The notes beneath the pieces are model-generated. The model was not told the DNA's origin. It searched no databases and saw only the letters and a list, made by a program, of their open reading frames with translations. A stretch of 64,000 nucleotides of DNA. Origin: Orbicella franksi (taxonomy: Eukaryota). The position numbers and the translations under genes were made by a program. The stretch lies in contig OZ116706.1 in the NCBI GenBank assembly GCA_964199315.1, positions 11,780,001-11,844,000 on the forward strand. The letters are read 5' to 3'. The number at the start of each line of letters is the position of its first letter. The first letter of the stretch is position 1. Of this stretch, positions 40,679-45,235 are shown in pieces.

Positions 40679-40766
40679 ATGGAGTCTTCACCTCCACTCT
40701 CGCTGAAGGCTAATGCTTTTTCCATAGCTTCTCTGATGTCTTCCAGAGATGATCGAAGCGATTTTG
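40679..40766 (+). CDS. Tbx20: T-box factor Tbx20 paralogue A, exon 1 of 7 (model 40679-45235, 399 aa)
   Basis: MESSPPLSLKANAFSIASLM, an eh1-type FSIxxLM motif as at the vertebrate TBX20 N-terminus. Donor G|GTAAGT. Confidence 0.85.
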
Positions 40767-40951
40767 GTAAGTGCTCAAAACCGTTGCTGGTATTTTAACA
40801 CACTTATCAGCTAAGTCATCCGTTTTGAGATTTTCACAAAGTGGCGCAAATTTTTGAGCGTGTTGGACGTACCGTACTAAGAATCCCTCAAAACAAAGCA
40901 TACTGAGCTCGTTATTGTGTTACAAATCATAATTTGTATTCTGTCATTTAG

Positions 40952-41195
40952 ACCCAAGAGAGTCTCCGAAGGACAGAGAGAGCGCTTCCGAAGACGAAAG
41001 CGCCCAGCCACCACCGGCCAAAAGGATGAAATCCTTGTCAAGTGAAGTAGCCACCGACGACGAAGACGGCGGCGAAGTGTTCGAAAACCCGTTCAAGGAC
41101 GAGTTGAAGAACATAACTGTGGAATTGGAAGGGAAAGAGCTATGGGAACGATTCAGTGAACTAGGAACTGAAATGATCATCACCAAGGCTGGAAG
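40952..41195 (+). CDS. Tbx20: Tbx20-A exon 2
   Basis: ...LEGKELWERFSELGTEMIITKAGR. 244 nt, phase 1 to 2. Confidence 0.9.
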
Positions 41196-41584
41196 GTGAA
41201 ACATCCACTGTTGGAATGTTAAATGTACTAACCTGGAAAAAAGCGGCGTTTACGTTGTGCCACCAACTGATCCATGCGCTAACCGCTAATAAATCGGTGC
41301 CGGAAGTCAAAGTTGTTAAAAAAGATAAGAGCTGTTTTGTAAACAGCTTCTTTACTTTCGCACAAACAGACAACATTTTGCCATTAACGTTTCTCACGGG
41401 TGTGAATTAGCTCATTCACGCAAACAAACTACTGAACCTAAAGTTATGATTTGACACCTGATAAGTGATGTAAGTCACAATCTCGATGATTTAATTTGCC
41501 AGACACGTAACTTTACGGACTTTATGTAAATAACTATCTATATTATCCTGCCAGGTAATTTGAAGTTTGCCCCTTTGCTTGCAG

Positions 41585-41858
41585 GCGAATGTTTCCCACA
41601 CTAAGAATATCCGTAAACGGCGTCAACCCTAAAGCAAATTACATGGTCCTAATGGATATTGTGCCTGTTGACGACAAACGCTACAGATACGCCTACCACC
41701 GTTCAACATGGCTTGTGGCTGGTAAGGCTGATCCACCAGCTCCTGTTAGACTTTATATGCATCCAGATTCACCTTTTACAGGCGAGCAGCTGTTAAAGCA
41801 GATCATATCGTTCGAGAAAGTAAAACTGACCAACAACGACGGCGACCGTAATGGGCAT
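41585..41858 (+). CDS. Tbx20: Tbx20-A exon 3 (T-box)
   Basis: [59 protein letters not shown] is the Tbx20 signature. 274 nt. Confidence 0.95.
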
Positions 41859-42241
41859 GTAAGTTCTAAACGGTATCACTTTCTGCATTATATCTGCCGT
41901 TAAGTTTGACTAAGACATTCGTTGTAAAATAGCCAGAGATCAAATTCGTATTCTTTATTTACTACGTTTCCCGTTTGCAGCGTCCACGAGAAAGCAATTG
42001 TAGTTTCCTAACATCCTCACCATTCTTATGCCATGAGATCTATTTCAAAGAAACAACTAGATTCCAGCTACATTTATGCGCCAGAAACTTGATCGATTGA
42101 CCCAAGTTTGCTGTGTCTGTCGTTTCCTCCTAGGAGATTGGGAAAACACGCCACTGAATGAAATGACGTTTTCTTCATAACTCAGCTCTCTATCCTTCCA
42201 TAAAGCGTCTTAATGATATCTTATGGTTTCAAACCTTGCAG

Positions 42242-42400
42242 CTTATTCTAAATTCCATGCATAAATACCAGCCAAGAGTGCATATCATTCGTAAACGTGA
42301 CCACACAGCTTCTGTAATCAATCTCAAGTCCGAGGAGATGAAAACATTCACCTTTCCAGAGACGAATTTCATCGGAGTAACAGCGTACCAAAATCAACTG
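42242..42400 (+). CDS. Tbx20: Tbx20-A exon 4 (T-box)
   Basis: LILNSMHKYQPRVHIIRKRDHTAS..VTAYQNQL. 159 nt, canonical splice sites. Confidence 0.95.
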
Positions 42401-42978
42401 GTAAGTCATCGGAAGCGAACTGTTCCATTCAATCCTACGTTTCTTTCATTTCGCAAAATTCACCTTATTCGAATCTCAAGCTGTTCGAATCTACTTGAAC
42501 AACAGACAAACCTTGGAATAACAAAATGTTTTTTACCTGCTTTCATTTTAATTAAATTATCATTTAATTAGGAAAAGCGCATGCAACATCGACAACTACA
42601 GTCTTTGATCCTTCTCTCTTAGCTATCTACCCTGAAACGCAAATGCCATCGCCTAACTGAAGGGAATTAATAGTATTAGTGTGCTTGTCAACAACAAACC
42701 AAAACAGGTTTTTTTTTTCATGAAACGCTGTGAACTTACAACCCAAGCTTTTTCCCACCATAAGATGTAATTTTCGATGTGGAAAAAAAATGACAGAGCT
42801 GGATCGTGATCGGAAATATGTTCAAATTAAATCTAGAAAACTAAGAAACGGATATGGTCTCCTTGCACATTTGCAAGCCTTTTTTCAGTCATCGCTGTCA
42901 ATTTCTTTTCGCGTGATCCTTACCTAATGATATGTTTGATAACTACTAGAGTTCCGTCTTTAATTTTCCGTTCTGTAG

Positions 42979-43055
42979 ATCACACGATTAAAAATAGACA
43001 GCAATCCATTTGCCAAAGGTTTCCGGGACTCAGCACGTCTTATTCCAGTAGAAAG
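42979..43055 (+). CDS. Tbx20: Tbx20-A exon 5 (T-box end)
   Basis: ITRLKIDSNPFAKGFRDS. 77 nt. Confidence 0.95.
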
Positions 43056-43552
43056 GTGGGTGGAACTTTGGTCAGACAAACAAAAGCTGAGTTTGTCAAC
43101 TGAGTACCTATGCTATTGTTCTCTAGACTGGAGTAATTCAAATTGTGGTTAGATGTTTCTGTTCAATTGAAGATTATGTTATCCTTAGTCTAGAAAACAC
43201 ATAACAGACCGGATGAAGAAAACTTTTGAAAATGTCTATTACCGTTCCCACTACTGGAAGCAGTACTTTCAATTACATTCCTAGTTTTCTTCCAAACAGT
43301 TTTTTTCTGACACAGCTTTTGTCTCCTTCTCCTTCTTCTATTTCTACCGTGAAATGACAAGTGTCATCAGAAAACGTATTCCTTTGAGACTGCGGAATGA
43401 TGCATAGCATTCTGCGAAATATAAAATAATACTGTTCTCTTCACTTCGACGATGATGAACCAAAGTACCTTAGAATAACGCTCCTCCAGGGCTATCGTAA
43501 ACCGCCTACCCAAAGCAACAACTAAAAATGGTTATTTTCTGTTCTTTTTTAG

Positions 43553-43710
43553 AGATTCCTTTCACGACAGCCATCCGCATGCAATGATCCCAGACCCGAT
43601 GTACACTTCTGTTCCCTTCCCTCTTATGCCACAGTTGGGTGTTAACAACAGATACCAGTTACCCAAGATGGGTTGCAGATCGCAGGACAAGGCGTCTTTC
43701 TTTCAATCAG
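43553..43710 (+). CDS. Tbx20: Tbx20-A exon 6
   Basis: Polypyrimidine TTTTAG| acceptor and CAG|GTAACT donor. Open in phase 2 to 1. Confidence 0.7.
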
Positions 43711-45035
43711 GTAACTTTTGATATGTAAAATAAACAAAGTGTTTGGGAAGACCAGACCCAATACATGTGGAAAAATGTCCGTTTACCAAACAGAGAAAGC
43801 AAACATAATGGAAAAGAATCTACATCACACAAAAACATAACGAACAACAAAATTAGGAGTTTATTCATATTACCCTAATGGGTGGCATCTAAAAATTAAT
43901 CGATTCTTACCACAATCTACTTATAACGACTTCTTCTGCACTGCTCGTGCAACTCAATAAAAAAAATTAACTAGAAACATTGAAATTTTTGATAGAACAA
44001 ATTCTTTGATATAGACTCTGACTCGTGCTCGTGATACAAGAGAAGAAATGGTTTCTACTCTTGAAGTTGACATTTTCTTGTCAAGGATTGATCTTGTCTA
44101 GAAATATTTTTAGTTGCTTCATGTAAGTATAAGATAGGTAAAAATGTTTGGACTGATAAAGGAAAAAGCGCCTTTGGAACTTAAACCCGTGATACCCGCA
44201 AGGCAAATCCCTACAAAACCACACTTCTTGAAAGTGACGATTGTCACAATCGTTGTCGATAATTGGTCCTTTGTATTTCAAGCTGCATAGACAGTTCTTT
44301 CTGTGGTGGAAAACTGTAATTTACAAAACATCAGTTCACTTTGTAGCAGTTTACTTGTTGCTCCAATAGTTAAGTAATGTCACAATTACTTTTGTTGCCT
44401 GGTTTGCATTCTCCTCTTCATAGCCATTTTTTTCGTTTAGTAGATCTCGGAAATCCTGCGGGCGAATTTTGCTTTCGGAATAGTTCATGATTGCTTATAG
44501 TAAGGATGGATACTGTTATTTCTGGCAGTTGTAATTTCATGAAAACAAATTGGTTAATTTGAAAATTTTATGAAGAGTACTCCTCATATAAGCATTTGCA
44601 CTGTGCGATGAAAATTCTGGAAAGTTCCTAAGTCGGAGAAAGCATCGGATCCACTCCTAGTTCAGTTCATCGACACCCAGACAAATTTATTTGAATGAAA
44701 CCTAATACTAGATTCAATTTGCTCAAGAATAGTGGGTCTTTATTCCTTTATAAACCTTTTTGTCGTCTTGTTTGATGGGAGAATTGCATCGGAGCTCTTT
44801 ATTTTTCTTTCCGTCAAAATTTTCCTGTTAACTCGTATTCAAAGAAATCTAACTGGATACCCGAGAGCTGTGGTTTTATGAAGAACGGCATTAAAAATAC
44901 ATTCCACTGGTCTGGCGTCTAATTTTGGCTACCCGCTTTTATAGGTTGCACCTTCAATAACTTCTAAAAACGTCTTGTGATTTCCTGCTTAGTCCTTTTT
45001 TTTAAATTTATGTCCTTTACAATCGTTTATTCAAG

Positions 45036-45235
45036 GTTGTCTTCCACCACCATCACCAGCTATTCCAAGGGTACCATTTACGGGAGTTCTGAGCGCGTTT
45101 CGCCAGCAGAGCTTACCTAATTTACTATCACCGACATTTGCTTCACCCAAGCCTATTGGAACACTGGAGGTACCTCCCCATCCACCTTACAGCGTTCACG
45201 GAGAGTTCCCTAGCTCAACATTGCCGTTCTTCTGA
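45036..45235 (+). CDS. Tbx20: Tbx20-A exon 7 (Pro/Ser-rich C-terminus)
   Basis: TTCAAG| acceptor, phase 1, open to TGA at 45233-45235. Confidence 0.65.

Follow-up and report, generated by a model that had tools for sequence, protein, structure and literature searches.

Concerted evolution of tandem gene families is reportedly captured by the models of Walsh 1987 and Teshima & Innan 2004, in which paralogues are said to 'escape' from conversion at high divergence. For transcription factors, a described case is that of the paired Dlx genes of the annelid Capitella teleta, where a gene-conversion tract of 150 bp was found in the homeobox (McDougall et al. 2011, PMC3199776). In the sea anemone Nematostella, NvTbx20.1 and NvTbx20.2 are known paralogues that are co-expressed in the circular and parietal (body-wall) muscle (PMC10060217). 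The two genes have been knocked down or edited together, and the double knock-down disrupts the body-wall muscle (bioRxiv 10.1101/2021.08.19.456976). These two studies make no mention of a DNA-identical exon 3 or of gene conversion in the NvTbx20 pair.

Here we analysed the orthologues of NvTbx20.1 and NvTbx20.2 in the coral Orbicella franksi, where both genes lie in a window of 64,000 nucleotides (contig OZ116706.1, positions 11,780,001 to 11,844,000). From the comparison of sequences we conclude that a central patch of exon 3 has very probably been subject to recurrent interlocus (non-allelic) gene conversion between the tandem Tbx20 genes. As in Capitella Dlx, the genes are linked paralogues of a developmental transcription factor, and a short tract covers an exon of the DNA-binding domain (150 bp there, 204 to ~305 bp here). 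The two systems are also alike in that the tract can spill into an intron, as in Nematostella Tbx20. The GC content of the Capitella tract is like that of its surroundings; for the Tbx20 tract, no clear GC signal was seen in a small number of sites. In contrast to Capitella, where one species is affected and other annelid pairs have no sign of conversion, the Tbx20 exon appears converted in at least four hexacoral lineages, and there is direct cross-species evidence against silent-site constraint, after an old duplication. The mosaic of a converted core and diverged flanks, the homology-dependent maintenance and the misleading gene trees resemble what the models of tandem families describe; the Tbx20 case differs from them in that the unit is part of one exon and the rest of the genes escaped long ago. 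The mechanism is thus known. In the searchable literature, with subscription journals outside its scope, we found no report of conversion or concerted evolution in Tbx20 or T-box genes, and as far as this literature goes the Tbx20 case, its replication across lineages and the sharp common borders are new.

The window contains two seven-exon T-box genes in tandem, both on the + strand and in the same orientation, with a distance of 11.3 kb from exon 3 to exon 3. Their features are as follows.

40679..45235, + strand: Tbx20 paralogue A, orthologue of Nematostella TBX20 XP_032233341.2 and of Orbicella TBX20-like X1
~40679-40765, 40951-41195, 41585-41858, 42242-42400, 42979-43055, ~43551-43787 and ~45026-45235, + strand: exons of paralogue A, from tblastn of P0163 and splice sites
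41585..41858, + strand: exon 3 of A, 274 nt, T-box profile positions ~26-116
41634..41837, + strand: putative converted tract in A, 204 nt, 68 codons, with the identical run bounded exactly at 41634 (left) and 41838 (right)
42242..42400, + strand: exon 4 of A, unconverted comparison region, B partner 54008-54166, A-B pS 0.93
42979..43055, + strand: exon 5 of A, unconverted comparison region, B partner 54835-54911, A-B pS 0.96
50407..58557, + strand: Tbx20 paralogue B, orthologue of Oculina patagonica P0170 and of B-type proteins of Porites and Montipora
~50407-50505, ~50866-51110, 52887-53160, 54008-54166, 54835-54911, ~56172-56360 and ~58402-58557, + strand: exons of paralogue B, from tblastn of P0170 and splice sites
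52887..53160, + strand: exon 3 of B, from the T-box profile match and splice sites
52936..53139, + strand: putative converted tract in B, partner of 41634-41837

Exons are numbered according to our gene model, with which the RNA-seq splice joints agree. For paralogue A, the joints 40765>40951, 41195>41585, 41858>42242 and 42400>42979 were observed, all of them GT..AG (run X23), and transcription of paralogue B is seen from RNA reads of the same run that carry letters specific to B, including reads across its junction of exons 3 and 4. Both A and B are thus real, spliced and expressed genes. Exon 3 matches the T-box profile PF00907 with 110.9 bits in A and 104.6 bits in B (cut-off 26), and exons 2 and 4 match as well. 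Over the full length, the best named matches come from the TBX20 proteins of Nematostella, Stylophora, Orbicella, Montipora, Acropora and Exaiptasia, with vertebrate TBX20 next; proteins of Oculina and Porites are also among the closest full-length relatives. The N-terminus of copy A is near-identical to Orbicella faveolata TBX20-like X1. Both proteins carry an N-terminal eh1-like FSIxSL motif (KANAFSIASLM in A, KATAFSIASLM in B), which is aligned across cnidarian Tbx20 proteins.

Some differences from the assembly were seen around gene A. All mapped DNA contigs, from two organisms, carry C>T at 40985, C>T at 42410 and a 1-nt deletion at 41318, the first of which is also found in RNA. At 40983 and 41184, about half of the RNA reads show the other letter of a C/T pair, and these look like heterozygous exon 2 sites in that individual.

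When comparing A to B, the tract stands out from the rest of the coding sequence. Its 68 residues (ANYMVL...KLTNN) are the same in both copies, and 8 of its 204 nucleotides differ, all synonymously (positions 41660, 41684, 41720, 41726, 41768, 41810, 41822 and 41831). Nucleotide identity is 96.1% in the tract, compared to 70.8% in the 5' part of exon 3, 61.9% in its 3' part, 69.8% in exon 4 and 68.0% in exon 5, and the longest perfect runs that remain between A and B are 41 nt. The Nei-Gojobori pS is 0.175 in the tract (8 differences at 45.7 synonymous sites) versus 0.869 outside (60.7 at 69.8). Furthermore, silent changes affect 8 of 64 degenerate conserved codons in the tract versus 47 of 78 outside (Fisher's exact p = 4.5e-9). 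The first-pass annotation, which had been made by eye, described this tract as sharply bounded, and we reproduced its coordinates, the 68 identical residues and the 8 silent differences exactly. Its counts for the neighbouring exons also agreed with our recomputation: silent differences are present at 26 of the 42 amino-acid-conserved codons of exon 4 and at 10 of the first 18 codons of exon 5. The codons just 5' of the tract had been called saturated, and 7 of the 12 conserved codons among the 16 compared there do differ; the introns, described as unalignable, were left unaligned by BLASTN of the A region against the B region, which aligned exons alone. That unchanged codons merely cluster by chance within a saturated alignment has a negligible probability in our estimate. 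Nothing speaks for it except that the tract was chosen after inspection; a scan statistic that corrects for this choice was matched by 0 of 5000 permutations, and three other lineages repeat the pattern.

A near-identical exon in two copies could also be an assembly artefact, where collapse or polishing pasted the exon of one copy into the other. Indeed, the short-read contigs of runs X1 and X10 are interrupted within the tract, in which words are common to A and B. However, the copies still differ at eight sites, at which RNA reads carry either all A or all B letters, and in the read sets of two organisms, each flank, that of A and that of B, is linked to the tract by contigs of its own. These independent read sets support both flank-to-tract junctions, which disposes of the mis-assembly that the first-pass annotation had asked to exclude with reads. 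The same pattern is moreover present in the independent assemblies of Oculina, the Tara scaffold and Nematostella, and we consider an artefact extremely improbable. The A stretch was found in 20 runs from 11 studies and the B stretch in 20 runs from 15 studies. Inside the tract, word depth approximately doubles, and A shows no letters besides its own except those of B, at precisely the eight sites. Reads of the B copy lie on A from 41634 to 41838 only, with loose ends.

Low silent divergence between old paralogues could alternatively result from selection at the level of the nucleic acid, such as an exonic enhancer, a splicing signal or an RNA structure, that holds the silent sites of the tract so that the paralogues simply did not diverge there. 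To compare this possibility with conversion, we used DNA of both genes from Nematostella (L008), a Tara Pacific coral metagenome scaffold (L015) and Oculina patagonica (L025), and DNA of a single type from the A-type contigs L009-L014 and L016, the B-type transcript L017 and Exaiptasia (B, L018). Montipora foliosa, Stylophora pistillata, Porites lutea and Acropora cervicornis were compared as proteins only. Between O. franksi A and its orthologues, tract pS was 0.22 for Oculina, 0.53 for L015, 0.59 for L009, 0.90 for L016 and 0.87 for Nematostella, versus 0.21, 0.26, 0.42, 0.70 and 0.74, respectively, in exons 4-5 of the same pairs; between O. franksi A and Exaiptasia B, it was 1.05. Orthologue pS in the tract (0.22-1.05) is thus no lower than in exons 4-5. 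Within each lineage that has both copies, the following was observed between the paralogues.

O. franksi: 8 A-B differences in the tract, paralogue pS in exons 4-5 of 0.94
Oculina: 5 A-B differences in the tract, paralogue pS in exons 4-5 of 0.86
L015 coral: 12 A-B differences in the tract, paralogue pS in exons 4-5 of 0.79
Nematostella: 0 A-B differences in the tract (204 nt), paralogue pS in exons 4-5 of 0.88

In the 204-nt tract, orthologues differ at 10-46 positions, compared to 0-12 between the paralogues inside each lineage. Exons 4-5 show the opposite among these corals, with a pS of 0.21-0.26 between orthologues and 0.79-0.94 between paralogues. The informative sites follow the same division. 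For O. franksi and Oculina, the ratio of sites supporting species pairing to sites supporting orthology is 7:0 in the tract and 1:65 in the other coding sequence (Fisher p = 4.9e-9); the tract ratios are 14:0 for O. franksi and L015 and 38:0 for O. franksi and Nematostella.

The constraint explanation has in its favour that no other part of the protein is as conserved as the tract and that the borders of the tract coincide in three corals. Against it, silent sites are saturated between species (pS 0.87 for Nematostella, 0.90 for L016 and 1.05 for Exaiptasia B, with 0.53 for L015 A), the silent changes shared by the two copies are species-specific at all of the tract sites counted above, and the RNA fold of the tract is no better than that of shuffled sequence (z = +0.92). 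We therefore regard it as very unlikely. The equal conservation of silent sites across distant orthologues, which the first-pass annotation had named as the observation that would speak against conversion, is absent; Nematostella and L015 even lie above their values in exons 4-5. As a separate candidate feature, a synonymous-constraint element was rejected on the same grounds, that is, the distant orthologues without silent-site conservation and the RNA fold.

Phylogenies of the two regions are incongruent. In the tract tree, the paralogues pair inside the species in all four lineages with both copies, whereas exons 4-5 pair the orthologues. With the tract data, the AU test rejected the orthology grouping (p = 0.0012 and 0.0006). 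With the data of exons 4-5, it rejected a clade of O. franksi A and B (with the additional copy C described below; p = 6e-13) and a clade of L015 A and B (p = 5e-5); the Nematostella pair as a clade was not significantly rejected by these exons (p-AU 0.079). Overall, exons 4-5 and the termini do not group by species. Species pairing in the tract only had been predicted for conversion, and it is seen in four lineages; that conversion would mislead gene trees is seen directly in the wrong grouping of the tract tree. Together, the incongruent trees and the unconserved silent sites support the original proposal that ectopic gene conversion homogenises part of the T-box while the rest of the genes diverges, and they indicate that conversion took place independently in at least four hexacoral lineages.

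To date the duplication, we inferred a protein tree without the exon 3 columns and rooted it with octocoral Tbx20, where one type only was found. In this tree, Nematostella copy 1 groups with coral A (support 88/87), and Nematostella copy 2 groups with Exaiptasia beside coral B with weak support (64/40). A duplication restricted to Nematostella was rejected (p-AU 0.0065), a rejection that comes solely from the longer protein alignment and not from exons 4-5. The types also have their own motifs: KANAFSI and WERFSELG are common to the A-type genes, and TKSGR and P-x-QRE are common to the B-type genes. The tree and the type-specific motifs thus place the Tbx20 duplication in the hexacoral ancestor, before the split of sea anemones and stony corals. 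This split is several hundred million years old.

The sea anemone genes show the pattern in its most extreme form. In Nematostella (GCA_932526225.1, OW051994.1), the stretch 12806-13110 (+) differs from 26762-26458 (-) at 1 position over ~305 nt. The near-identical stretch includes the whole of exon 3, from ~4 nt upstream of it to a point ~28 nt inside intron 3. Moreover, both copies carry Nematostella-specific residues, namely an M-to-L change and the flanks SGVQPK and DTDHNGH. The spill into the intron and the species-specific residues in both copies are explained only by homogenisation at the DNA level and not by selection on the protein. Homogenisation in Nematostella appears to be very recent or ongoing. 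In Exaiptasia diaphana (LJWW01000051.1), the B-type gene is present, and of the A-type gene we found exon 5 alone, at 26935-26861 (-), in tail-to-tail arrangement; this exon sits inside a called gene without a recorded Pfam match. The pair is arranged head-to-tail in the corals (the window, L015 and L025) and tail-to-tail in the sea anemones (L008 and L018), which suggests an inversion in one of the two lineages. The orientation of the pair does not matter for conversion.

In O. franksi, the last homogenisation seems to be old rather than recent, since the dS of the tract (~0.20) is near the divergence of the Oculina orthologues (pS 0.21-0.40) and far above that between copies B and C (0.02-0.04). 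L015 A, L015 B and L017 B each differ from the O. franksi tract at 24 positions, an equal distance that gives no donor direction. A signature of GC-biased conversion was looked for by comparing GC3 of the tract to that of exons 4-5, and no clear signal was found: in the tract, GC3 is 0.46 for A and 0.43 for B, versus 0.40 and 0.41 in exons 4-5, small differences over few sites, and in Nematostella it is 0.75 in the tract versus 0.67 and 0.55.

The borders of the patch are the same in three corals, starting at the Ala-Asn-Tyr codons and ending at Thr-Asn-Asn. The coral tract lies wholly inside the exon, and intron spill is seen in Nematostella only. The coral flanks within exon 3 (16 codons before and 7 after the tract) hold paralogue-specific residues and follow orthology, with V-NGV-NPK and DGDRNGH in A and L-NGV-SLD and GTDENGH in B. 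Random independent events alone do not predict such common borders, and either a homology limit or selection on the flanks must be added.

We propose the following mechanism. The patch encodes the stretch of the T-box DNA-binding domain that is conserved most strongly, and a break in one copy would be repaired from the other copy. Every such event would reset the silent divergence in the patch, while the ends of the exon, the other exons and the introns go on diverging. The process may sustain itself, as strong constraint on the protein would keep the core similar enough for pairing during repair, so that the core never escapes. In corals, the borders may be set because the flanks are too different, or because selection removes conversions that erase paralogue-specific residues.

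The genome contains further T-box copies that can be compared to this pair. A third Tbx20 copy (C) is located at C9:12355816-12359262 (-) (L005/L006), inverted and ~525 kb downstream of the window. It is a duplicate of B with 96-97% identity; the duplicated part starts in intron 2, at window position ~51528, and reaches at least 63135. Intron 3 of C holds an insertion of 2.1 kb, and no exons 1-2 were detected in the 15 kb upstream. Three replacements affect otherwise invariant T-box residues (RYRY>RSRY, IVLNS>IFLNS and TAYQ>TAHQ). Copy C probably represents a truncated duplicate in decay; that it is a misplaced haplotype is less likely.

A second example of an exon-3-only pattern like that of Tbx20 was found in a Tbx1/10-like pair, at C12:7258938-7259216 (-) and C12:7282462-7282740 (+) (L023/L024), 23 kb apart and in opposite orientation. 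Here, considering the O. franksi copies only, exon 3 differs at 10 of 273 nt (pS 0.14, 2 residue changes), with a pS of 0.63-0.88 in exon 4 and unaligned introns. In a third tandem T-box pair (C12:8665909 / 8693234), exon 3 is just 66% identical and no sign of conversion was found.

Lastly, we considered the functional meaning of the conversion. The 68 residues of the tract remain 94-100% identical even where two copies have long gone without exchange and are saturated at silent sites; for instance, O. franksi A and Exaiptasia B differ at 55 nucleotides and 4 residues of the tract. Purifying selection alone thus keeps the protein the same. As none of the 8 differences in O. franksi changes a residue, and the residues would not differ without conversion either, conversion there is probably a neutral by-product. 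A wider tract, as in Nematostella, carries amino-acid changes between the copies. The first-pass annotation had raised the possibility that conversion locks the paralogues onto shared targets, and in a selective version of this idea, conversion is favoured because a homogenised DNA-binding core keeps two co-expressed factors on the same targets. This would fit with the homogenisation of the same exon in four lineages and also in the Tbx1/10-like pair of the O. franksi genome, and with the Nematostella Tbx20 genes being co-expressed in body-wall muscle, where they were knocked down together (PMC10060217; bioRxiv 10.1101/2021.08.19.456976). However, purifying selection suffices to explain the identical residues, and the coral conversion stops before the paralogue-specific residues. 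Such a lock is not needed to explain the data, and we consider it unlikely. Going beyond recurrent conversion of the Tbx20 patch, it is conceivable, and we suggest it only tentatively, that the core T-box exon of hexacorals may be a permanent hot spot of concerted evolution, held under conversion without a break since a Tbx20 duplication older than the split of sea anemones and stony corals. It would affect more than one T-box pair, given the pattern in the Tbx1/10-like genes, and selection on paralogue-specific residues would police its borders.

The Tbx20 pair provides a clean and replicated natural experiment, with one old duplication, a single-exon patch and four lineages, and with a wider tract in the sea anemone. 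It could thus be used to measure the homology that conversion needs and whether selection sets the borders of a tract. For Nematostella, the finding means that probes, shRNAs, guide RNAs and short RNA-seq or single-cell reads from exon 3 cannot separate Tbx20.1 from Tbx20.2. Furthermore, trees of cnidarian T-box genes are usually based on the domain, and these will show false lineage-specific Tbx20 duplications unless exon 3 is removed. If the core T-box exon is indeed a hot spot, domain-based phylogenies of cnidarian T-box genes would carry a systematic distortion, and co-expressed paralogues would be unable to diverge in their DNA-binding cores.
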